Virus record (IMG/VR): IMGVR_UViG_3300042402_002564
Coordinates: 182,503-246,502 of that record
Length of the DNA: 64,000 nt
Reading direction: 5' to 3' (one strand)
Below are positions 27,511-63,480 of this stretch, piece after piece (position 1 is the first letter of the stretch; every line of letters begins with the position of its first letter). The notes beneath the pieces were generated by a model. The model ran no database searches. It was given only the letters and a program-made list of their open reading frames with translations, and was not told the DNA's origin. The position numbers were made by a program, and so were the translations under genes.

Positions 27511-27519
27511 ATGGAGTAT

Positions 27520-27590
27520 GGGGGATTAGTTTAGTGGTAAAACGGGTGCTTTGCAAGCATCAATCACCAGTTCGACTCTGGTATTCTCCA
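27520..27590 (+). tRNA. tRNA-Ala(UGC)
   Basis: Cloverleaf, anticodon TGC, G3:U70, A73. Confidence 0.92.
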
Positions 27591-27593
27591 TAT

Positions 27594-27676
27594 GCCTAAG
27601 TGGTGGAATGGTAGACACAGCGGACTTAGAATCCGCCGCCTTAAAAAGCGTGGAAGTTCGAATCTTCTCTTGGGCA
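27594..27676 (+). tRNA. tRNA-Leu(UAG)
   Basis: gcgga-CTTAGAA-tccgc, long variable arm. Confidence 0.92.
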
Positions 27677-27708
27677 CTAAATATTTTAAATGCAGTTAAA
27701 ATTCCAAA

Positions 27709-42477: not shown

Positions 42478-42660
42478 ATGGAAGACATTAAAAAACAATA
42501 TCCAAGTCCATCAGATTTAAATAATCTATATGGACATACCGATTTGGAAGGATTTTCCAAATATCTTGGTGTAAATTATGATACTCTTCTTGAAATAAAT
42601 AGAAAGAATGCTGAAGTTATTCGAAAATCGGCAAAGGGGTTGACAGAGCAAGACGTTTAG
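42478..42660 (+). CDS. Small hypothetical protein
   Basis: 60 aa ORF; overlaps the -35 of the tmRNA promoter. Confidence 0.45.
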   Translation: MEDIKKQYPSPSDLNNLYGHTDLEGFSKYLGVNYDTLLEINRKNAEVIRKSAKGLTEQDV

Positions 42661-42668
42661 GGTACTAT
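42640..42668 (+). promoter_or_regulatory. Sigma70-type promoter for tmRNA/tRNA-Arg
   Basis: TTGACA-17 nt-TACTAT. Confidence 0.7.
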
Positions 42669-42674
42669 ATAGAT

Positions 42675-42911
42675 TGTTCAGGAGGAGAGATCCACTGGCA
42701 TTTCGGACTGGGGTTCGACTCCCCACAACTCCATAAATCAAGGGGTTGACAAGGTTTCGACGGGGTGTTATGATCTTATCTGTTGATGGAACAAACAACA
42801 AACGCCAACAAAATCGTGGCATTCTCTCGTAGCAAAGTTGCTACCTTAGTTTGAGAGACGGGGTGACGACTACCTTGTAATCCAAAGTCGCGGGCAGTGG
42901 AATGCTGCCAC
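42675..42911 (+). ncRNA. ssrA: Circularly permuted (two-piece) tmRNA, cyanobacterial type
   Basis: T-arm plus acceptor 3' strand CAACTCC-A (to 42733), 8-nt spacer, GGGGTTG..TTCGAC 5' end (42742), G3:U70; tag ANKIVAFSRSKVATLV* at 42804-42854; outer ends approximate. Confidence 0.9.
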
Positions 42912-42915
42912 TTAT

Positions 42916-42989
42916 GCCTCAGTAGCTCAGTGGACTAGAGCATCCGCCTTCTAAGCGGTTGGCCGCAGGTTCGAATCCTGCCTGAGGCG
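42916..42989 (+). tRNA. tRNA-Arg(UCU)
   Basis: Cloverleaf, anticodon TCT. Confidence 0.92.
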
Positions 42990-43317
42990 TTGACTTTTAA
43001 AATAAAAAGTCTTATAAATAATAACACTTAGGTCGAAAACAATGTCTTATCCAATGCCCAAACAGTTTAGTAATCTCGATTGCCGTTATTGGCATATTGA
43101 GGGTACTCCCCTGTTTGTGGATATGGATAAACATATGTAGTATGTAATCCATAAAAACAAAAAGACAGGGGAGAGAAACCAAAAAGTTTCCTCCCCTTTT
43201 TTGTTGCCTGTGACAGGTTCCTAAGTGTCCACCAATCTCCCCTAAGAGACCAAACGGTGGTATTCTAATCAAGTGGTCGAGAGAGACCACGATTTGCACC
43301 TTGACAATTTAACCCTT

Positions 43318-43390
43318 GGGTCTGTAACTCAGTTGGTAGAGTAGCGGGCTTTTAACCTGTAAGTCGTCGGTTCGAGCCCGACCAGACCCA
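43318..43390 (+). tRNA. tRNA-Lys(UUU)
   Basis: Cloverleaf, anticodon TTT. Confidence 0.92.
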
Positions 43391-43428
43391 TTGACCGCCA
43401 CAGTTCGGTCGTTAAACATAAACTGTTC

Positions 43429-43519
43429 GGGAGAGTGGCTACTGTTGGCAATATGTGTGGCTGCGGTCTGTAAAACCGTTACATCGGAACCATCGGGGGT
43501 TCAATTCCCTCCTCTCCCA
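43429..43519 (+). tRNA. tRNA-Tyr(GUA), atypical long D-loop
   Basis: gcggt-CTGTAAA-accgt, long variable arm, T-arm. Confidence 0.8.
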
Positions 43520-43523
43520 CCTT

Positions 43524-43596
43524 GACCCTATAGTGAAGTGGTCTATCACGCTACCCTGTCACGGTGGTATCACGGGTTCGAATCCCGTTAGGGTCG
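43524..43596 (+). tRNA. tRNA-Asp(GUC)
   Basis: Cloverleaf, anticodon GTC, G73. Confidence 0.92.
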
Positions 43597-43775
43597 TTGG
43601 GAGTCAGTATTCTAACTCCCACGCATTCTTCAGAGGTTGCCAGTTTGCAGAAGAATGTTGTAGTAATAACTGGAATTGGGGAGGGATTTCTAACCACCAT
43701 CGGATGATGGCAGGATTCATAAGGCTACGAAGCGTAATCCGTAAGTAACTTCGTGTGGGATACCCCTCCCATCAA

Positions 43776-43851
43776 GGTCCCATCGTCTAATTGGTCAGGA
43801 CGCGACCCTTTCAAGGTTGAAACGCGGGTTCAAACCCCGCTGGGACTACCA
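43776..43851 (+). tRNA. tRNA-Glu(UUC)
   Basis: Cloverleaf, anticodon TTC, CCA encoded. Confidence 0.92.
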
Positions 43852-43852
43852 A

Positions 43853-43929
43853 CGGAATGTAGCTCAGTTTGGTAGAGCTCTGGTTTTGGGAACCAGTTGT
43901 CGCAGGTTCGAATCCTGTCATTCCGACCA
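43853..43929 (+). tRNA. tRNA-Pro(UGG)
   Basis: Cloverleaf, anticodon TGG, CCA encoded. Confidence 0.93.
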
Positions 43930-44002
43930 CGGGGAATAGCTCAGTTGGTAGAGCACATGCCTGAAGAGCATGGTGTCGGTGGTTCAATTCCACCTTCCTC
44001 GG
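43930..44002 (+). tRNA. tRNA-Phe(GAA)
   Basis: catgc-CTGAAGA-gcatg. Confidence 0.88.
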
Positions 44003-44139
44003 CTTGGGTTGCTGCCCGATATGAGAAACACTCCTGTATTTCTAGGATACGGTAGGGTGAAAACTCGGAATTACCTCTGCCCCGTCTCTTGGGGATGCGA
44101 ATTGAGGAAAGGTAAAGGGAAGAGACAGCAACCCATATT

Positions 44140-44212
44140 GGAAACATAGCTTAGTTGGTAAAGCATTCGACTGATAATCGAAAGACCACTGGTTCGAGTC
44201 CAGTTGTTTCCA
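44140..44212 (+). tRNA. tRNA-Ile(GAU)
   Basis: Cloverleaf, anticodon GAT. Confidence 0.93.
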
Positions 44213-44299
44213 TAGGACTCCAGCAAGGTGCTTGCTAGGATATAAAAGACTGACGCCTCCCTCTTCAGAAAGAGTACCCAGCAGGTCAGCGTCCATTTT

Positions 44300-44371
44300 G
44301 GCAGTGTAGTTCAGTGGTAGAACAAGAGATTCATACCCTCTATGTCGGTAGTTCAATTCTACCCACTGCCT
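44300..44371 (+). tRNA. tRNA-Met(CAU)
   Basis: Cloverleaf, anticodon CAT. Confidence 0.82.
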
Positions 44372-44372
44372 T

Positions 44373-44443
44373 GTGTCGTTAGCCTAGTGGTAAGGCAGTG
44401 GTTTGTGGAACCACCTAGATGGGTTCAATTCCCATACGACACC
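44373..44443 (+). tRNA. tRNA-His(GUG)
   Basis: Anticodon GTG, C73. Confidence 0.88.
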
Positions 44444-44445
44444 CC

Positions 44446-44524
44446 GTTCAGGTGGCAGAGTGGTCGAATGCGGAAGTCTGCAAAACTTCTATTACCGTGG
44501 GTTCGAATCCCACCCTGAACTCCA
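44446..44524 (+). tRNA. tRNA-Cys(GCA)
   Basis: Anticodon GCA, U73, CCA. Confidence 0.92.
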
Positions 44525-44528
44525 AAAA

Positions 44529-44599
44529 GTTGGATTGGTGTAACGGTAGCACGACGGTCTCCAAAACCGTTAGTGGGAGTTCAAATCTCTCATCCTTCG
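44529..44599 (+). tRNA. tRNA-Trp(CCA), two acceptor-stem mismatches
   Basis: acggt-CTCCAAA-accgt; acceptor GTTGGAT/ATCCTTC. Confidence 0.75.
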
Positions 44600-44604
44600 C
44601 CTAT

Positions 44605-44677
44605 GCCCTCGTAACTCAGTGGCTAGAGTATCCGCCTTCTAAGCGGTTAGTCGTAGGTTCGAATCCTACCGAGGGTG
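44605..44677 (+). tRNA. tRNA-Arg(UCU), second copy
   Basis: Cloverleaf, anticodon TCT. Confidence 0.92.
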
Positions 44678-44681
44678 CTTT

Positions 44682-44755
44682 GTCCTCTTAACTCAGTGGA
44701 CCAGAGTGCTTGGCTACGAACCAAGAAGTCGCAAGTTCAAATCTTGCAGAGGACG
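44682..44755 (+). tRNA. tRNA-Arg(ACG)
   Basis: cttgg-CTACGAA-ccaag. Confidence 0.92.
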
Positions 44756-44850
44756 CTTGACAAACTTACAAAAGTTTGTTACTATATAATAGTGATAGAG
44801 GTTGAGTCCCTGTTACATCCTTATGAGGTGTATCACACTCAATCCATCAA

Positions 44851-44925
44851 AGTGGGGAAGTGTAACGGTTGCACAGAAGTCTCATAAGCTTCAAGAAGGA
44901 GGTTCAATTCCTCCCCCCGCCACCA
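44851..44925 (+). tRNA. tRNA-Met(CAU), initiator-like
   Basis: Anticodon CAT, 1:72 mismatch, CCA encoded. Confidence 0.78.
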
Positions 44926-44928
44926 CAT

Positions 44929-45001
44929 TCCCTTATAGCTCAATTGGCAGAGCACGGAGCTGTTAACTCTGGGGTTCCTGGTTCGAGTCCAGGTGGGGGA
45001 G
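44929..45001 (+). tRNA. tRNA-Asn(GUU)
   Basis: Cloverleaf, anticodon GTT, G73. Confidence 0.92.
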
Positions 45002-45133
45002 TTTTAATCTAGGAATAAAATGATTAATATTTTTAAAAAAATCTATTTTAATATAAAAGCATATATTGAATTTAAAAAAGTATCTAAAAAATGTAGAGAA
45101 GAAGACCCATACATCTATAAATAAAACTAAAAA

Positions 45134-45904
45134 ATGACTAATAATATATTAGTTACATTTGGATGTAGTTGGACTTTTGGTGAAGGATCTGGATATGTTG
45201 ATGGAATGGATCAAAATGAATATGAAGAAATTCAACAGGATGAAAAAATATGTTATGATAATTCTTGGAGAAAAATCATAGTAGATCATTATAATCTTAG
45301 ACACATAAACTTTTCTGTTCCAGGAAGTAGCAATCAAAGACAGTTTAAAACTGCTAGGGAATATTTTGTAACAGAAGAATGGAAAAAATTAATTAGTGAA
45401 CGCAGAAATAATGTTGTTGTTTTGTGGGGAATTACCAGTACATATAGAAATTATTTTTGGTGTAAAGATACTAATAGATACCAAAACATTTTTTATTCTA
45501 AATCTAAATATGATAGATACCAAGACAAATTGGCAAAAGCAATGATGTCATGGTCCTATGTTAAAGAGGTTGAGGAAGAAGTTGTAAAAAATGAAATATT
45601 ATTTTTTAATCAATATTTTAAATTGGTTGGTGTAAAAAATATGTGGTTTGATACTTTTAATTCTTTAGATTATAAAGAAAAATTTGATAATTTTTTAGAT
45701 CAATATAAAGAACAGAGAGATCTTTTATCGATGCTTTGTTATGAACATGCTAGAAAATTAAATGGCAGATTAGTTTTGAATAATAATTTTAAATATGCTG
45801 AAGAAAATGGATTAATAAATTTAATTAGTTTTCATCCTAAAAAAGAACAATATAAAATTATTGGTGAATATTTTATTAGAAAATTGAAAAAATACTTCAA
45901 ATAA
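45134..45904 (+). CDS. SGNH-hydrolase-like hypothetical protein
   Basis: FGCSWTFG block I, GSSN, C-terminal HP. Confidence 0.6.
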   Translation: MTNNILVTFGCSWTFGEGSGYVDGMDQNEYEEIQQDEKICYDNSWRKIIVDHYNLRHINFSVPGSSNQRQFKTAREYFVTEEWKKLISERRNNVVVLWGITSTYRNYFWCKDTNRYQNIFYSKSKYDRYQDKLAKAMMSWSYVKEVEEEVVKNEILFFNQYFKLVGVKNMWFDTFNSLDYKEKFDNFLDQYKEQRDLLSMLCYEHARKLNGRLVLNNNFKYAEENGLINLISFHPKKEQYKIIGEYFIRKLKKYFK

Positions 45905-45954
45905 ATCAATAAATAGTTGACAAAATAATTTGTCTCTGTTAAAATAAAATCATC

Positions 45955-46026
45955 GGGCGATTAACTCAGCGGTAGAGTGGCCTCCTTACAAGTGGTAAGT
46001 CACTGGTTCGATTCCAGTATCGCCCA
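45955..46026 (+). tRNA. tRNA-Val(UAC)
   Basis: Anticodon TAC; TTGACA promoter upstream. Confidence 0.9.
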
Positions 46027-46173
46027 TATATAAAATGAAGCATATATAACTTATGAAAGATAAAAAATTCAAAAAATTAATTCAAAAACCTTTAAGATTT
46101 CATCATCAAGATATCCATGAAGAACTTGATAGTATTAAATTATCATTAGCAGATATTAGGAGATTAATGGAAA

Positions 46174-46431
46174 ATGTTAGTAGTGAGATGCAAAGATTGC
46201 AACAAAGAGTTGACAAGTCATCCATCTAAAACTCAGTGTTGTGGATGTTCTAATATGATGACTGTCTGTGCTGATAACATATCAGCCATTGATTTAACTA
46301 AAGTAATTATTATTAATTCAAATAATAAAAAACCTCATAAAAAAACAAGTTTATTTTCTCCAGAAGAACTTGAGTATCAAGAATCTAGAAGAAAAAGAAA
46401 AGTTCGCAAATTAGATTTTGAAATACGTTAA
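46174..46431 (+). CDS. Small Zn-ribbon-like conserved cyanophage protein
   Basis: CKDC...CCGCSN; RRKRKVRKLDFEIR. Confidence 0.65.
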   Translation: MLVVRCKDCNKELTSHPSKTQCCGCSNMMTVCADNISAIDLTKVIIINSNNKKPHKKTSLFSPEELEYQESRRKRKVRKLDFEIR

Positions 46432-46471
46432 ATCTTAACTAAATAAGAAAATAAAGTTTTCTTATTAACTT

Positions 46472-46558
46472 GGAAGGGCAATCCGATTGGCGACGGAACC
46501 TGTCTTGAAAACAGTTGAGGTGTTAAAGCCCTTGGGGGTTCGACTCCCCCTCCTTCCG
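46472..46558 (+). tRNA. tRNA-Ser(UGA)
   Basis: Anticodon TGA, long variable arm, G73. Confidence 0.9.
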
Positions 46559-46657
46559 TTTAACAATTTTTTAATTTGTGTTATAAAATGAACACAATAC
46601 ATTGACGTTTAAAAATTAAAAACTATTATATAGTAGTACAACTACTTATAAACCCCA

Positions 46658-46813
46658 ATGGATGATCATACTTACCAAAATTGGGTGAAGATTAAAGAAA
46701 CCTTTGAGTCTTCTGGTAATACAAATAACATGTTTTATCGTAGGGCCTGTGAAATAGTAAAAACTAAAAGAGACCCTTTAGCAAAGTTTTTTGGTGATAC
46801 TAATAATGGATAA
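46658..46813 (+). CDS. Small hypothetical protein (MDDHTYQNWVKIK...)
   Basis: Clean ORF after a TTGACG promoter; below track cutoff. Confidence 0.55.
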   Translation: MDDHTYQNWVKIKETFESSGNTNNMFYRRACEIVKTKRDPLAKFFGDTNNG

Positions 46814-47044
46814 AACAATTATATCTGCAATAATAATTTTTACATTAATTGGTTTATTCATCAGATGGGGACTTACAAACGCATATGCGTAAGTAAAGAT
46901 AATTTAAATGGAGAGAAAGATGATTTTTCATATTGTAGAGACTCTTGCAGCGAGTCCAGTTTGGTTGTTCTTTTGCGGTTTTGGCTTGACAGTTGTTCCT
47001 TTTATGGGTATAATGATTATACACCGAGATAAATAATCTTATTA

Positions 47045-47118
47045 CGGGGTGTAGCTCAGTTTGGTAGAGCACTGCTTTTGGGAAGCAGGGGCCGTAGGTT
47101 CGAATCCTATCACCCCGA
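47045..47118 (+). tRNA. tRNA-Pro(UGG), second copy
   Basis: Cloverleaf, anticodon TGG. Confidence 0.92.
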
Positions 47119-47322
47119 TTAGTAAAATCTTTGTAATTTTACTATTTAAATTTTAGTTAATGATTTTTTTAAATGGAATCACAACAGGAAATTTCTAAAA
47201 TTGAATCTATAGATTTTACTAATGAGTCAAGTAAAGATGCATCAGAGACAGATATCAAAGAGTTGATAGAGGTCTTGACAAACCACAACGATGCATGTTA
47301 ACTTTGATTTGTTGAAACACAC

Positions 47323-47397
47323 GGGACTGTCGCCTATTGGTTAAGGCCCACTGCTTATAACGGTGTGAACTGAGTTCAATTCTCAGCAGTCCTACCA
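47323..47397 (+). tRNA. tRNA-Ile(UAU)
   Basis: cactg-CTTATAA-cggtg, CCA encoded. Confidence 0.88.
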
Positions 47398-47398
47398 A

Positions 47399-47470
47399 GG
47401 GAGTATAGCTTAATGGTTAGAGCGGCCTGCTTATAACGGGTTAGTCTGGGTTCAACTCCCAGTATTCCTA
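47399..47470 (+). tRNA. tRNA-Ile(UAU), second divergent copy
   Basis: gcctg-CTTATAA-cgggt. Confidence 0.88.
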
Positions 47471-47499
47471 TTGCTATTCGCTATTTGCGAATAACGAAT

Positions 47500-47572
47500 G
47501 CTCGTTTAGCCATCTGGTGAAGGCAGCGAACTCATAATTCGCCTCAGGAGAGTTCGATCCTCTCAACGAGCA
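47500..47572 (+). tRNA. tRNA-Met/Ile2(CAU)
   Basis: gcgaa-CTCATAA-ttcgc. Confidence 0.85.
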
Positions 47573-47649
47573 CTCGGACAGAATTTAATCTGTCCATCTT
47601 GACTTCTCCAAGTCAACCCCTTATAATATTAAGGTCAACATTCAAAACA

Positions 47650-48142: not shown

Positions 48143-48275
48143 AGTACTGGTGGAGTCAAATGACCCTCATTTTGGTTTCTTGCTTTTCCATTAAAAAGCA
48201 AGTGGTGCGGATGGGGAATTCTTTCTCCGCCTGGTTTCTTGCCTCCAGTTAAAGGGCAAGTGGCGAGCCTGAATT
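48143..48275 (+). ncRNA. manA-like structured RNA motif
   Basis: CTGGTGGAGTC..GACCC followed by two GGTTTCTTGC..CC..AAA..GCAAGTGG modules next to the tRNA cluster; recognised from memory, not searched. Confidence 0.6.
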
Positions 48276-60232: not shown

Positions 60233-60291
60233 ACGAAGGAGGGTTTATCCCTCCTTTTTTAATAAATATAATGCAGGGTTTGGATACTATA

Positions 60292-60990
60292 ATGCTCATC
60301 GATCTTCACAATTTTTTTAAACACTTTGATGAAAATAATCCAAAGCATGTTGCTGCGGTAGAACAATTTGAAAAAGATTTGCTTTTAAAGGCACACGAAT
60401 TGATGCAAGACGAAGCAAATTGGGTAAGGATTTTTAGAACAAAAGAGAACAAACCCCAAGCAACTATTTTACCAGTTCCTTTTTATCCACAAACAGATAA
60501 CTATAGAGATGCAAATAGAACCTGCAACTCTTCTGCTTGTGCAATGTGTCTTGAGTATTTCAAACCTGGCACACTAAAAGGACCTAAGGGCGATGACGCC
60601 TATGTACAAAAAGTTTTTTCAATTGGTGACACAACTGATCACCTGGTTCAAACCAAAGTTCTTGCGTCATACGGTATTAAATCCAGTTTTTCCTACAGCC
60701 TTACTTTTGCTGATCTTGATAGAGAGCTTGCCGCTGGTAGACCTGTTGTTATTGGCATTCTTCATCGCGGGACTTTATCTAATCCCACAGGAGGACACAT
60801 GGTAGTGGTGATTGGTAAGACACCTTCTGGTGATTATGTCGTTAATGACCCTTATGGATCATTAAATGATGGATATACTGGTTCCGTGAACAATGGTAAG
60901 GGTGCTGTTTACAAACGTTCCGAATTATCTCGTAGATGGTGCCCTAAAGGTAATGATGGTTGGGGTAGAATTTTTGATGTAAAAAAGTAG
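60292..60990 (+). CDS. C39-like cysteine peptidase (putative endolysin domain)
   Basis: Q...CNSSACAM, GHMVVV.G, VNDPYG. Confidence 0.8.
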   Translation: MLIDLHNFFKHFDENNPKHVAAVEQFEKDLLLKAHELMQDEANWVRIFRTKENKPQATILPVPFYPQTDNYRDANRTCNSSACAMCLEYFKPGTLKGPKGDDAYVQKVFSIGDTTDHLVQTKVLASYGIKSSFSYSLTFADLDRELAAGRPVVIGILHRGTLSNPTGGHMVVVIGKTPSGDYVVNDPYGSLNDGYTGSVNNGKGAVYKRSELSRRWCPKGNDGWGRIFDVKK

Positions 60991-61053
60991 AATCAACATC
61001 ACAATCAAAAATCCCTCAATGTGGTGTTGATTTAATTAGAGAGTTTGAGGGAT
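60981..61053 (+). other. Predicted -1 programmed ribosomal frameshift signal
   Basis: A_AAA_AAG slippery heptamer (60981-60987) plus pseudoknot (stems 60991-61003/61020-61032 and 61011-61019/61045-61053). Confidence 0.8.
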
Positions 61054-61469
61054 GTCACTTGAATGCTTATCCAGACCCACTAACTGGTGGACTTCCAATT
61101 ACAATTGGTTGGGGTTCTACTAAAGATTTTGATGGTAAATCTTTTAAATTGGGTAGAAAAATTACTCAAGAATATGCAGATAAATTATTGTTATTTGACC
61201 TTGAACAAAGATTTCTTCCTTCATTGCAAAAAATACCTTATTGGAGCGAAATGAATGACAACCAACGTGGAGCACTTCTCAGCTTTGCTTATAATCTCGG
61301 TGCTGGCTTCTATGGTAACAGCAATTTCAATACTATTACCCGCAATCTACGTGAGAAGAATTGGAAAGCAATCCCAAAAACATTAGAGATGTATCGTAAT
61401 CCTGGTAGTAAAGTTGAAGCAGGATTACTTAGAAGAAGAAAAGCGGAGGGTAAACTCTGGGTTTCTTAA
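60987..61469 (+). CDS. GH24 lysozyme domain (-1 frame; probably made as a frameshift fusion)
   Basis: DLIREFEGCHL.AYPD....TIGWG...ALLSFAYNLG...GLLRRR.AE; frame open from 60978, no ATG before the catalytic Glu. Confidence 0.88.
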   Translation, partial: VESTSQSKIPQCGVDLIREFEGCHLNAYPDPLTGGLPITIGWGSTKDFDGKSFKLGRKITQEYADKLLLFDLEQRFLPSLQKIPYWSEMNDNQRGALLSFAYNLGAGFYGNSNFNTITRNLREKNWKAIPKTLEMYRNPGSKVEAGLLRRRKAEGKLWVS

Positions 61470-61705
61470 TCTTCTACCTTTGTTCGTAGAGCGATTACTG
61501 TAGTTAGAATTGCTAATAGAGTTTCATATCCTCTTCTCTCAGATTCTTTACAATCTAAGGGAGGAGGATTTTTTAGTTTTCCTAATGCATTTGCAGCATT
61601 GATTGACCCTGGAAACATAAAGTTACATGAAATAAAATTAATTCCAACAAATCCAATAGCGGAGAAACAAACTATAAAGATAAGTTTGGTTAGATTAAGT
61701 TTCAT
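61466..61705 (-). CDS. Small membrane protein
   Basis: MKLNLTKLIFIV... two hydrophobic segments; ATG coupled to upstream minus-strand ORF. Confidence 0.5.
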   Translation of the reverse strand: MKLNLTKLIFIVCFSAIGFVGINFISCNFMFPGSINAANALGKLKNPPPLDCKESERRGYETLLAILTTVIALRTKVED

Positions 61706-61893
61706 CTTCCTTCTTGACGATGAATCCAGGTTTTGAGTTCGTGTAAATATGTTCTTAATATTTGTGCTTGTTCTTGATGCCAAAAATCACCCGTCTCCAA
61801 CCAGAGACGGGTGTGATTATCTATTGCCTTAAGTATTTGGTGGATAGGAGCATTCCAACACTCCCTTTTTGGAGTGTTCCACTCTCTGGGCAT
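61702..61893 (-). CDS. Conserved cyanophage hypothetical protein
   Basis: MPREWNTP.RE.WN.PIH..LKAIDNH. Confidence 0.65.
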   Translation of the reverse strand: MPREWNTPKRECWNAPIHQILKAIDNHTRLWLETGDFWHQEQAQILRTYLHELKTWIHRQEGR

Positions 61894-62088: not shown

Positions 62089-62279
62089 CTTTTTAAATAA
62101 ATCTACTTTATTTTATTTAGCAATACTATATCTTAATTATTATACGGTTATCAATATATCAACCCTTTATTTAGGATGTGCCAGTTGAGCAATTGTACCT
62201 ATTGACAGGGTTTGCTGACAATGTTATTATAAATACATCAAAACGTTAAGGAATGTAACACTTCTTTAATGTTTGTGAC

Positions 62280-62390
62280 TCCCGTTAACCGAGACCTATG
62301 GGAGTATAAATTACGTCTCTCATGCCCACACTGGGGGTGGTGTGGGGAATAACGTAACATCCAGTTCCCCCTGGACTTTTTACTTACCCT
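62280..62390 (+). ncRNA. PhotoRC-II-like structured psbA 5' leader
   Basis: AACCGAGACCTATGGG...CGTCTCTCAT...hairpin...CCAGTTCCCCCTGGAC..TACTTA directly before psbA; recognised from memory. Confidence 0.7.
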
Positions 62391-62400
62391 TTTAAACAAA

Positions 62401-63480
62401 ATGACTGCTACACTTTCACAACAACGACAATCAAATACTTGGGAACAATTCTGCAACTGGGTTACTTCAACCGACAACCGCCTCTATGTGGGTTGGTTCG
62501 GAGTCCTGATGATCCCTTGTCTGCTTGCTGCTACAACTTGTTTTATCATCGCATTCATCGGTGCTCCTCCTGTGGACATTGATGGTATCCGCGAACCTGT
62601 TGCTGGTTCACTCATGTACGGAAACAACATCATCTCTGGTGCTGTTATCCCTTCGTCCAATGCAATTGGACTGCACTTTTACCCCATCTGGGAAGCTGCT
62701 TCCCTAGATGAGTGGCTCTACAACGGTGGTCCTTTCCAACTCGTTGTCTTCCACTTCCTGATTGGTATCTATGCTTATATGGGTCGTGAGTGGGAACTTT
62801 CTTATCGTCTAGGTATGCGTCCTTGGATCTGCGTTGCATACTCTGCTCCTGTTGCTGCTGCTTCTGCAGTGTTCCTGGTCTATCCTTTCGGTCAAGGTTC
62901 TTTCTCTGATGCGATGCCTCTGGGTATCTCTGGCACCTTCAACTACATGCTGGTGTTCCAGGCTGAGCACAACATCCTGATGCACCCCTTCCACATGCTC
63001 GGTGTTGCTGGTGTATTTGGTGGTTCTCTGTTCAGTGCGATGCACGGTTCGCTTGTAACCTCTTCGCTTGTTCGTGAAACCACTGAAAACGAGTCGCAGA
63101 ACTACGGTTACAAGTTCGGTCAAGAAGAAGAGACTTATAACATCGTTGCTGCTCACGGTTATTTTGGTCGCCTTATTTTCCAATATGCTTCCTTTAATAA
63201 CTCCCGTTCTCTGCACTTCTTCCTTGCTGCTTGGCCTGTTGTAGGCATCTGGTTCACTGCTCTTGGTGTTTCTACGATGGCCTTCAATTTGAATGGCTTC
63301 AACTTTAATCAGAGCATTATGAGTTCTGAAGGTAAAGTTGTTAACACTTGGGCAGATGTGCTCAACCGTGCTGGTCTTGGTATGGAAGTTATGCACGAAA
63401 GGAACGCACACAACTTCCCTCTGGATCTTGCTGCTGCTGAGAACACTCCTGTTGCTCTCACTGCTCCTAGTATCGGTTGA
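62401..63480 (+). CDS. psbA: Photosystem II D1 protein
   Basis: Full D1 sequence ([33 protein letters not shown]); no intron. Confidence 0.99.

Follow-up and report, generated by a model that had tools for sequence, protein, structure and literature searches.

The question raised by positions 60292 to 61469 of the window (the whole 64,000-nucleotide stretch analysed, positions 182,503 to 246,502 of IMG/VR virus record IMGVR_UViG_3300042402_002564) is how a lysozyme can be produced when its reading frame lies in the −1 frame behind a peptidase gene and offers no start codon of its own. We consider it likely that a T4-like cyanomyovirus expresses a single late lysis gene here by programmed −1 ribosomal frameshifting. 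The analysis establishes the signals with their conservation and covariation, the identities of the domains and the natural in-frame fusions. Ribosomal slippage itself and its efficiency are inferred, without junction peptide, reporter or ribosome-profiling data. The locus comprises the following features.

60236..60260, + strand: terminator-like hairpin AAGGAGGG-TTTAT-CCCTCCTT followed by a T run, closing the upstream peroxiredoxin gene (read from the sequence; terminator role inferred)
60261..60268, + strand: AATAAATA, a T4-type late promoter-like motif, 23 nt 5′ of the ATG (read from the sequence; promoter role by resemblance only)
60292..60990, + strand: peptidase ORF in the 0 frame, including the TAG, for a 232-aa papain-like (Peptidase_C39_2) cysteine peptidase (Pfam, homologue N-terminus, invariant residues, AF2/Foldseek)
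60981..60987, + strand: slippery heptamer A_AAA_AAG, 0-frame codons GTA AAA AAG (read from the sequence; conserved among homologues)
60988..60990, + strand: 0-frame stop TAG, adjoining the heptamer (read from the sequence; adjacency kept in 73 of 78 junctions)
60987..61469, + strand: −1 frame continuation of 160 codons, linker and GH24 lysozyme, with TAA at 61467-61469 (Pfam, PDB alignment, phrog_3617)

The 0 frame of the peptidase ORF ends with GAT GTA AAA AAG TAG, in which the run of six A residues (A6) occupies 60981-60986 and the heptamer has the X_XXY_YYZ form of bacterial −1 shift sites in the 0 frame. The −1 frame is blocked by a TGA at 60975-60977 and is open only from 60978. Therefore, the change of frame is confined to 13 nt containing the heptamer. 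Read from G60987, the −1 frame translates as VESTSQSKIPQCGVDLIREFEGCHLNAYPD... and continues to the TAA. Its first ATG, GTG or TTG is the TTG at 61059, which is downstream of the catalytic Glu codon (61047-61049). Upstream of the gene, the hairpin at 60236..60260 was absent from the consensus scan's list for the window, and we take AATAAATA to be similar to TATAAATA-type late promoters, on resemblance only.

The peptidase and lysozyme pieces were searched separately, never as a read-through. The 0-frame ORF matched Peptidase_C39_2 of Pfam (E 3.7e-13, 50.7 bits against a cutoff of 24). Its N-terminus, MLIDLHNFF, agrees with the homologues, in the alignment of which Cys78/Cys83, His169 and Asp186 are invariant. 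A PDB sequence search with the peptidase gave no meaningful match. An AF2 model, predicted from an alignment built from IMG/VR loci, had a pLDDT of 78.7, and its Foldseek matches were C39-like peptidases, the phytochelatin-synthase-like Alr0975 and PeiR (E about 1e-4, TM about 0.45-0.5). Cleavage of peptidoglycan by the peptidase is inferred, the support being association only, namely lysozyme fusions in many cyanophages and ‘endolysin’ annotations. The −1 piece matched Phage_lysozyme (PF00959; E 1.3e-24, 87.3 bits against a cutoff of 22.3) over profile positions 2-125 of 125, and GH24 lysozymes in the PDB matched it from about residue 9 (best E 3.6e-15). The GH24 catalytic motif is Glu-x8-Asp ... 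Thr. It can be read from the translation as E(GCHLNAYP)D followed by the T of ITIGWG, with an Asp-to-Thr spacing of 8, not 5; activity is inferred.

The two pieces are also colinear with natural fusions. In phrog_3617, a 405-position profile about as long as the single-ORF fusions of ACG-2014f-type phages, the peptidase maps to positions 1-235 and the lysozyme piece to 242-404. Single-ORF cyanophage endolysins of the ACG-2014f gp198 type (phrog_3617) contain the same two domains, homologous over the full length, and have a K-V-E linker at the same place (...F-D-A-K-V-E-E-K-K... against F-D-V-K-K-V-E in the window). However, they are continuous ORFs, whereas the window requires a change of frame and would yield a peptidase-only product as well. 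S-CREM1 gp9 is likewise a peptidase-lysozyme single ORF, with the domain order reversed.

In the proposed mechanism, in-frame ribosomes would stop at TAG 60988 and release the 232-aa papain-like (C39-like) cysteine peptidase. Some of the ribosomes decoding AAA-AAG would slip back one base on A_AAA_AAG, slowed by a hairpin of 9-14 bp with its stable core from 6 nt downstream, which is probably extended to an H-type pseudoknot in the window's lineage. Continuing with GTA GAA TCA ..., the shifted ribosomes would complete a peptidase-linker-GH24 muramidase of 392 aa. Lacking a start codon, the lysozyme would be made only as the fusion, and the shift site would thus set the ratio of peptidase to fusion.

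The number of heptamers in the window was rejected as evidence for frameshifting: AAAAAAG occurs 56 times against 49 expected, a chance-level frequency. With so many copies in an AT-rich genome, the case depends on the context of the heptamer. We collected 130 distinct junctions from four IMG/VR scans and phage records. The sequence NNA AAA AAG was found in the same frame in 78 of them, with the lysozyme in the −1 frame and no overlapping start (the A6 class), and the stop directly follows the heptamer in all but five. The codon preceding the lysines is GTA, GCA, GAA, ACA or ATA, its third base always being A, and the lysines are always AAA then AAG, against a background of 61% AAA and 33% third-base A. 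The 60 nt 3′ of the site folded with a median z of −3.44 in the A6 class, with 84% below −2. Such structure is mostly missing from relatives in which the lysozyme has its own start, is a separate gene or is fused in frame, z being about 0 at overlap-start (median −0.19), separate-gene, peptidase-only and in-frame loci. All 78 hairpins of the A6 class are located within 2-8 nt downstream, and they comprise 54 distinct 5′ arms with a median contiguous stem of 10 bp. Compensatory changes were found in three arm families (5/13, 5/11 and 3/12 pairs), exceeding slid and shuffled controls, and RNAalifold recovered the stems unaided. The amino acids of the linker under the 5′ arm vary freely, so selection is acting on the RNA. 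Because the junction sequences are related, fewer independent events underlie them than the counts suggest.

These comparisons bear on two rival explanations. One is that an ancestral fusion gene suffered a frameshift mutation, leaving the lysozyme part as a decaying pseudogene and only the peptidase functional. Indeed, 17 related junctions have a peptidase without a lysozyme within 1.5 kb, indicating that the peptidase can stand alone. However, dozens of diverged lineages (60-100% amino-acid identity) retain the GH24 motifs and an uninterrupted lysozyme frame of 160 codons, and the Pfam and PDB matches span the full lysozyme domain. The A6 class also forms the backbone of a 118-row clade, implying long persistence under selection, and no scattered stops or indels were found in the lysozyme frame among the A6-class genomes in the data collected. 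A pseudogene can therefore be set aside almost entirely.

The other is that the lysozyme is translated alone, from a non-canonical start (ATC 61011 or ATT 61035) or by termination-reinitiation after the TAG, the locus being two coupled genes. Separate expression is viable in the family, since overlap starts (ATGA, GTGA or TTGA) occur in about 15 related junctions and wholly separate genes in several. The window, however, has no ATG, GTG or TTG between the opening of the frame and the catalytic Glu, and the candidate Ile codons are not kept as starts in relatives, which have GTC, ATA and GTT. No Shine-Dalgarno-like sequence precedes ATC 61011 or ATT 61035 in the window. In addition, the overlap-start loci are without a strong hairpin; therefore, overlap start and hairpin look like alternative solutions. 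We regard independent translation as very improbable.

The frameshift reading further depends on RNA structure at the site, for which two stems were considered.

60991..61003, + strand: stem 1 5′ arm, conserved core 60994-61002 (RNAfold, RNAalifold, covariation)
61020..61032, + strand: stem 1 3′ arm, core 61021-61029, on lysozyme codons C-G-V-D-L (RNAfold, RNAalifold, covariation)
61011..61019, + strand: candidate stem 2 5′ arm ATCCCTCAA, in the stem 1 loop, codons I-P-Q (complementarity, resampling)
61045..61053, + strand: candidate stem 2 3′ arm TTGAGGGAT, on catalytic-motif codons F-E-G (complementarity, resampling)

Stem 1 consists of 13 bp with one G:U (T60999:G61024), and RNAfold extends it by G60990:T61033. 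The spacer from the heptamer is 2-3 nt for the stem of 13-14 bp and 6 nt for the conserved 9-bp core, which RNAalifold found without guidance. The 3-nt spacer of the full 13-bp stem is shorter than the usual 5-9 nt, a range reached only by the conserved core with 6 nt. In the stem 1 family of the window, 91.5% of cells were paired and compensatory changes occurred in 5 of 13 pairs. The observed stability was matched in 0.6% of draws in synonymous resampling of 24 codons. The window alone, with 73 nt folded, reached only z = −1.6 against dinucleotide shuffles.

The two arms of stem 2 are fully complementary and give a 9-bp stem; a stem of this length appears in 0.3% of synonymously resampled sequences (p = 0.003 with the protein unchanged). 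The pseudoknot would have loops of 7 nt (L1), 0 (L2) and 12 nt (L3), a geometry that may be sterically feasible by analogy. Both arms encode conserved residues. The core pairs in the window's lineage showed one-sided G:U-type changes only, with no double changes, and the stem is broken in 5 of 33 sequences. In the sister clade, it lengthens to 11-14 bp at four loci (L239, L242, L209 and L215) and is 9 bp at L248. Loop-to-downstream pairing of this type was sought in every hairpin family; it was significant only in the window's family and the sister clade (21/81 sequences) and absent from the other families. Therefore, we do not claim the pseudoknot as a general feature. It is a good candidate in the window's lineage, with non-random pairing and no compensatory proof, and the formation of stem 2 remains inferred. 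Searched against Rfam with a permissive threshold, the junction matched no curated frameshift element and had hits at chance level only.

An earlier note on this locus, made without database searches, had placed the ORF end, the heptamer, the −1 frame, the possible starts and both pairings, and all these coordinates held. It had proposed checking whether homologues keep the heptamer and the stem, as they do in the 78 distinct junctions, and whether both stems show compensatory changes, which were found in stem 1, the changes in stem 2 being of wobble type only. Its H-type pseudoknot held in part, as the pairing is exact and non-random and double-sided covariation was not found.

A second slippery site was found in S-CAM7. 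Three isolates and two metagenome contigs have a T8 run, T_TTT_TTT, with a hairpin (GTAGAACC/GGTTCTAC) 5 nt 3′ of the site that is unrelated to the A6-class hairpins. S-CAM7 is nested inside the in-frame-fusion clade with 100% support. Its position in that clade, together with the T8 run and the unrelated hairpin, indicates an independent origin.

The two site types bear on two further rivals, both of which concern the homopolymer itself. It could be argued that an assembly or sequencing indel has hidden a true A7, so that the genome encodes a plain in-frame fusion. Homopolymers are error-prone, and two contigs (L167 and L188) do show A7 and encode plain fusions; either some genomes do without frameshifting, or the A7 of these two contigs is erroneous. 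However, 78 distinct junctions of many metagenomes have A6, as do contigs L008 and L009, which come from two metagenomes and do not differ from the window, and S-PM2 in both of its sequencings (the wild type and a resequenced deletion mutant). An indel would also leave the heptamer frame, the adjoining stop and the covarying hairpin unexplained, and S-CAM7 has the same arrangement by T8 in three isolates. Because of the conserved signals, the A6 of S-PM2 in two sequencings and the three isolates of S-CAM7, we judge an indel very unlikely.

Alternatively, RNA polymerase may slip, adding an A on A6 (or a U on the S-CAM7 T8), so that a subset of mRNAs encodes the in-frame fusion. The resulting protein would be identical, homopolymer runs are the feature common to both site types, and A7 variants exist in DNA. 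The T8 of S-CAM7 is a borderline case, close in length to the runs on which bacterial RNA polymerases are known to slip. However, appreciable transcriptional slippage needs runs of about 8-9 or more, and the A6 of the window falls short. That AAAAAAG always ends in G and strictly keeps its frame is relevant to the re-pairing of tRNAs but not to a slipping polymerase, and in the polymerase model a covarying hairpin at the distance of a frameshift stimulator would have no role. Polymerase slippage thus appears hardly tenable as well. The core reading of the earlier note, a −1 shift giving a 232-aa peptidase and a 392-aa fusion, is accordingly supported by the in-frame heptamer, the covarying hairpin, the absence of a start codon and the in-frame fusions among relatives, and the A7 that it named as a possible refutation is disfavoured by the comparative evidence. 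Its ‘fixed ratio’ and the fusion product are without experimental demonstration.

The programmed ribosomal frameshift proposed here resembles several known systems. In the OrfAB of IS3-family elements (IS911, IS150, IS3), A_AAA_AAG is located near the end of the upstream ORF and is followed by a hairpin or pseudoknot. A −1 shift there joins two domains, of which the second is without a good start of its own, and a short product and a trans-frame fusion are made. The present case differs in that it concerns a phage lysis enzyme, not a transposase, with no sequence homology, no upstream Shine-Dalgarno-like enhancer assigned, and the 3′ arms of the stems on conserved catalytic-domain codons. E. 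coli dnaX (gamma/tau) has the identical heptamer, a stem-loop about 6 nt downstream and decoding by tRNA-Lys(UUU). The dnaX shift, however, leads to a near-immediate stop and a shorter product, whereas shifting here would add 160 residues and, with them, a second enzyme. dnaX also has an upstream Shine-Dalgarno element, and none is demonstrated here. The sequence GGGG at 60962-60965, 15 nt before the heptamer, was considered as such an enhancer and proved uninformative; it lies within W-G-R codons invariant in all classes, and therefore no inference can be drawn from it.

Among tailed phages, the lambda G/GT tail chaperone and T7 gene 10A/10B show conserved −1 recoding that yields two proteins with a common N-terminus in a set ratio, although they serve virion assembly rather than lysis and use other slippery sequences. 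Several Gram-positive phage lysins are reported to have an internal start and also give two lysis proteins from one gene in a fixed proportion. There, in-frame secondary initiation gives the full length and a C-terminal fragment, whereas recoding here would give an N-terminal enzyme and the full length. No description of frameshifting in a lysin gene of a cyanophage or other phage was found in the full-text literature searched, outside which most subscription journals lie, and this absence is not proof. The mechanism is thus canonical (dnaX/IS3-like), and its use in an endolysin appears undescribed in that literature.

The window also encodes a tRNA that may be relevant to the shift site.

43317..43391, + strand: phage-encoded tRNA-Lys, anticodon UUU (ARAGORN and Rfam tRNA)

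In E. coli, A_AAA_AAG is so shift-prone because tRNA-Lys(CUU) is lacking. The phage tRNA-Lys(UUU) would decode both codons of the shift site, and a tie to frameshifting is possible, as speculation. A bolder reading, which we consider unlikely, is that frameshifting here is more than a fixed-ratio device and that its efficiency is perhaps tuned during infection. The tuner might be this tRNA, or temperature or energy state acting on a pseudoknot made of lysozyme catalytic-motif codons. The same reading would have frameshifting originate at least two times (A_AAA_AAG and U8) and repeatedly replace, or give way to, plain fusions, separate genes and overlap-start coupling; as a whole, it remains improbable. 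If it were true, the ratio of peptidase to fusion could help to time or shape lysis.

Dozens of related phages, the model phage S-PM2 among them, carry this frameshift signal without annotation. The lysozymes of S-PM2, S-CAM7 and many metagenomic cyanomyoviruses are annotated as truncated ‘lysins’ of 72-90 aa without the catalytic Glu, or are unannotated. If confirmed, the finding would represent conserved recoding in a lysis gene and correct the annotation of these viruses. The family spans plain fusion, reversed fusion, frameshift with two slippery sites, ATGA coupling and separate genes, and thus offers a natural series for the origin and loss of recoding signals. The stem arms on conserved catalytic-domain codons make a clear overlap of RNA and protein constraints, and S-PM2 on Synechococcus WH7803 is a tractable system for the frameshift. 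Confirmation would also mean that these phages deliberately use a single mRNA for both a free peptidase and a two-enzyme fusion, with implications for the dismantling of picocyanobacterial walls and for the timing of bursts in abundant aquatic viruses.

The virus carrying the window is a T4-like cyanomyovirus, and psbA, ferredoxin and peroxiredoxin genes are all present in this stretch. At the peptidase/lysozyme locus, the nearest sequenced relative was Synechococcus phage S-PM2 (74% nucleotide identity). The locus is laid out as follows (window coordinates).

60236-60260: hairpin and T run, 3′ of the gene upstream of the peptidase ORF
60261-60268: AATAAATA, 23 nt before the peptidase ATG
60292 (ATG) to 60988-60990 (stop): peptidase ORF, 232 aa (Peptidase_C39_2, 3.7e-13)
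60975-60977: TGA closing the -1 frame, which is open from 60978 to the TAA at 61467-61469
From G60987, -1 frame: reads VESTSQSKIPQCGVDLIREFEGCHLNAYPD..., with a complete GH24 domain (Phage_lysozyme, 1.3e-24)
60991-61003 with 61020-61032: stem 1, 13 bp, one G:U
61011-61019 with 61045-61053: stem 2, perfect 9-bp pairing of the stem 1 loop with downstream sequence
61466-61783 (-): convergent ORF of 105 aa that has a single hydrophobic segment, overlapping the lysozyme stop by 4 nt

The peptidase ORF ends GAT GTA AAA AAG TAG. The -1 frame contains no ATG, GTG or TTG until the TTG at 61059, downstream of the catalytic Glu codon (61047-61049), and alignment to solved GH24 lysozymes begins at about residue 9 of the -1 frame piece. 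The earlier note had proposed that a pseudoknot-stimulated -1 frameshift joins the peptidase to the lysozyme. Its heptamer before the stop, its frame layout and the missing start codon all held, and a sequence check confirmed the 13-bp stem and the 9-bp loop-to-downstream pairing as described. T4-type late promoters were the comparison used for AATAAATA; by this analogy, the motif and the terminator-like hairpin before it may suggest a late transcription unit of the peptidase gene's own. The convergent ORF had no match in PHROG; it might encode a membrane lysis accessory (holin or spanin candidate) or might not be a gene.

The claimed peptidase-muramidase fusion was supported by a colinear match to phrog_3617, a profile of 405 positions in which the peptidase covered 1-235 and the -1 piece 242-404, and by natural in-frame fusions. 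The junction of in-frame relatives reads ...W-G-R-I-F-D-A-K-V-E-E-K-K-S..., and the trans-frame junction predicted for the window reads ...W-G-R-I-F-D-V-K-K-V-E-S.... The fusion is thus very probably the homologous product of those natural fusions. The GH24 catalytic motif is defined as E-x8-D with a downstream Thr. Both elements were present, and from domain matches and motif the lysozyme is in all likelihood a standard GH24 muramidase. The peptidase residues Q67, C78, C83, H169 and D186 were invariant in the alignment. Its AF2 model (pLDDT 78.7) resembled C39-like peptidases, the gamma-glutamyl-cysteine-cleaving Alr0975 and the pseudomurein endoisopeptidase PeiR (E ~1e-4, TM ~0.45-0.5). We regard it with high confidence as a papain-like cysteine peptidase. 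This domain recurs widely among cyanophage proteins with endolysin or lysozyme annotations, podovirus and siphovirus ones among them; cleavage of peptidoglycan stem peptides is inferred.

Taken as a single sequence, the window contains 56 copies of AAAAAAG where 49 are expected, and heptamer frequency alone is uninformative. When codons were redrawn with the window's codon usage and amino acids fixed (5000 draws), 0.64% of draws folded as well as the observed stem 1 region, and a 9-bp Watson-Crick stem 2 arose in 0.34%. Against dinucleotide shuffles the 73-nt segment was only modestly unusual (z = -1.6). Decisive evidence must come from relatives. In total, 258 homologous loci (L-numbers below) with 130 distinct junction sequences were collected from phage records and from four scans of IMG/VR.

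Junction classes among the 130 distinct sequences
A_AAA_AAG read in the peptidase (0) frame, with the lysozyme in -1 and without an overlapping start: 78
T_TTT_TTT in the same frame arrangement (S-CAM7 type): 3
Lysozyme with its own start codon in an ATGA/GTGA/TTGA overlap: 15
Separate genes or inserted domain: 6
Peptidase only, lysozyme absent within 1.5 kb: 17
Conventional in-frame fusion (ACG-2014f type): 8
In-frame through A7 in place of A6 (L167, L188): 2
One ORF with reverse domain order (S-CREM1): 1

Of the 78 junctions in the A_AAA_AAG (A6) class, 73 have the stop immediately after the heptamer and five have it one codon further on. Contigs L008 and L009, which come from different metagenomes, had a junction identical to that of the window. 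In the Synechococcus phage S-CREM1 (L003, 1497-2678) a single ORF encodes the lysozyme first and the peptidase second. The overlap-start (ATGA/GTGA) loci L002, L052, L065, L076, L086, L191 and L198 (junctions near 2190-2240) mostly retain A_AAA_AAG one codon upstream. A short hairpin of 6 bp, ATTCC...GGAAT, is retained as well, with covariation to GATTCC/GGAATC in L065 and L086; such loci might combine coupling and frameshifting. In L084, L202, L211 and L223 an extra segment of ~50 codons runs from the ATGA overlap before the lysozyme, about 150 nt past the peptidase stop.

The slippery site is very likely under selection at the nucleotide level. The lysine pair was AAA then AAG in all 78 A6-class junctions, and lysines elsewhere in those genes were 61% AAA. 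The preceding codon was GTA, GCA, GAA, ACA or ATA, covering five amino acids but always ending in A (background 33%). Peptidases without a -1 lysozyme usually stop before both lysines (e.g. ...IFD-stop, ...VFT-stop); the pair therefore belongs to the junction and not to the peptidase fold. The earlier note's concern about an assembly indel was answered by S-PM2, whose GCA AAA AAG TAA and stem AGCTCTACT/AGTAGAGCT occur in the original genome and in an independently sequenced deletion mutant, so that a sequencing artefact is very unlikely. The S-PM2 "putative lysin" annotation starts at an internal ATG, and the resulting 72-aa fragment lacks the catalytic Glu. All three isolates of S-CAM7, and two contigs from metagenomes, carry the T_TTT_TTT (T8) run. 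The A7 contigs (both about 2180-2200) encode a plain in-frame peptidase-lysozyme ORF with the downstream hairpin retained, and could be genuine variants or else errors in the homopolymer.

The hairpin, too, is very likely selected as RNA. For the 60 nt 3′ of the site the frameshift class (n = 81) had a median z of -3.44, with 84% below -2, compared with -0.19 for overlap-start, -0.40 for separate or peptidase-only and +0.20 for in-frame junctions. Its hairpins comprised 54 distinct 5′ arms; stems ran uninterrupted for a median of 10 bp, after spacers 2-8 nt long. Arm sequences were wholly different between families (AATCAACATCACA, GCCAACTAA, AGTTCTATTCC, AGCTCTACT, CCCCACTAT and others); the 3′ arm mostly coincided with the codons for G-[VI]-[DEN]-L of the lysozyme, and the 5′ arm lay in a linker with freely varying amino acids (ESTSQSK..., ETPTNN..., KVLFLKE...). 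Pairs of a named helix were counted within each of three families. Paired cells and compensatory changes amounted to 91.5% and 5 of 13 pairs in A1 (the window family), 96.7% and 5 of 11 in A2 (which includes S-PM2), and 90.1% and 3 of 12 in A3. The covariation score was reached by 0/500 shuffles in A2 and 7/500 in A3; the A1 control (0/500) applies to stems 1 and 2 together, none being given for stem 1 by itself. In each family, pairing fell to 13-51% when the partner was slid by 1-3 columns. Unguided RNAalifold recovered the same helices, in the window a 9-bp core (60994-61002 with 61021-61029) 6 nt past the heptamer. Conservation of heptamer and stem with compensatory changes, a check named in the earlier note, thus held for stem 1 in three families.

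The pseudoknot held only in part: the complementarity exists, but it is lineage-limited and lacks compensatory double changes. The stem 2 core (61011-61017 with 61047-61053) was paired in most window-family sequences, with G:U-compatible substitutions only; five sequences in which it was broken have a more G+C-rich stem 1 instead. In a sister clade it is lengthened by different bases to 11-14 bp (L239, L242, L209, L215; e.g. AATGACATCCCTC with GAGGGATGTCATT) and either rivals or adds to a stem 1 of 8-9 bp; in L248 it is 9 bp. In loop-shuffle tests 21 of 81 sequences reached p < 0.01, and almost all of them belong to the window family or this sister clade. Where a family's loop has only 5-8 nt, the pairing cannot form. 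The universal stimulator is likely the hairpin; for the window's lineage, an H-type pseudoknot is a good candidate that lacks proof.

On the peptidase tree (quick IQ-TREE, inner-branch support often weak), junctions of the A6 class make up the backbone of a clade with 118 rows. The other states in that clade (overlap-start, separate, peptidase-only, reversed and A7) occur at scattered positions and so appear to be derived replacements. T8 junctions form a single clade (100% support) inside the in-frame fusions, and their hairpin GTAGAACC/GGTTCTAC, 5 nt past the run and wholly in the linker, is unrelated in sequence to A6-class hairpins, indicating a second origin of the same solution. Parsimony gave 22 transitions, a count that is only indicative because many inner branches are weakly supported. 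Near-identical peptidases with different hairpin-arm and linker families (L022 vs L027, L016 vs L024) may mean that phages have exchanged a linker-lysozyme module, or that the tree is unresolved.

Other RNA elements were also found. The window encodes a cyanobacterial-type permuted tmRNA (42646-42909; Rfam RF01851, 113 bits; tag peptide ANKIVAFSRSKVATLV per ARAGORN) and 24 tRNA genes in two arrays (27519-27677 and 42915-47573). These include tRNA-Lys(UUU) at 43317-43391; no tRNA-Lys(CUU) was among the tRNA genes in the window. A wcaG RNA motif lies at 48171-48274 (96.6 bits), and a PhotoRC-II motif at 62266-62360 (72.2 bits), just upstream of psbA (62401-63480).

In the proposed mechanism, tRNA-Lys would slip in tandem on A_AAA_AAG, with the hairpin or pseudoknot as stimulator. 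Alternatively, the adjacent 0-frame stop could add a termination pause allowing P-site slippage from AAG to AAA, giving the same product; both routes are possible and present data do not distinguish them. The same protein could also arise by transcriptional slippage, the chief alternative, which is considered unlikely for A6 and rated higher for T8. Under ribosomal frameshifting, the ratio of peptidase to fusion would be set by the shift efficiency, for which no value is available. The mechanism matches the canonical bacterial -1 site: IS3-family OrfAB sites are the closest mechanistic match and dnaX has the same heptamer. Neither is homologous to the lysis gene, which differs in gene class and in having stem arms built on catalytic-domain codons. 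No GenBank record inspected annotates a frameshift, and the full-text literature searched contained no report of programmed frameshifting in cyanophage lysin or other phage endolysin genes. Frameshifting in this lysis gene is likely, being well supported computationally in the absence of experimental proof. The mechanism is thus a known one, and its use in an endolysin gene is, judging from the literature searched, apparently new.
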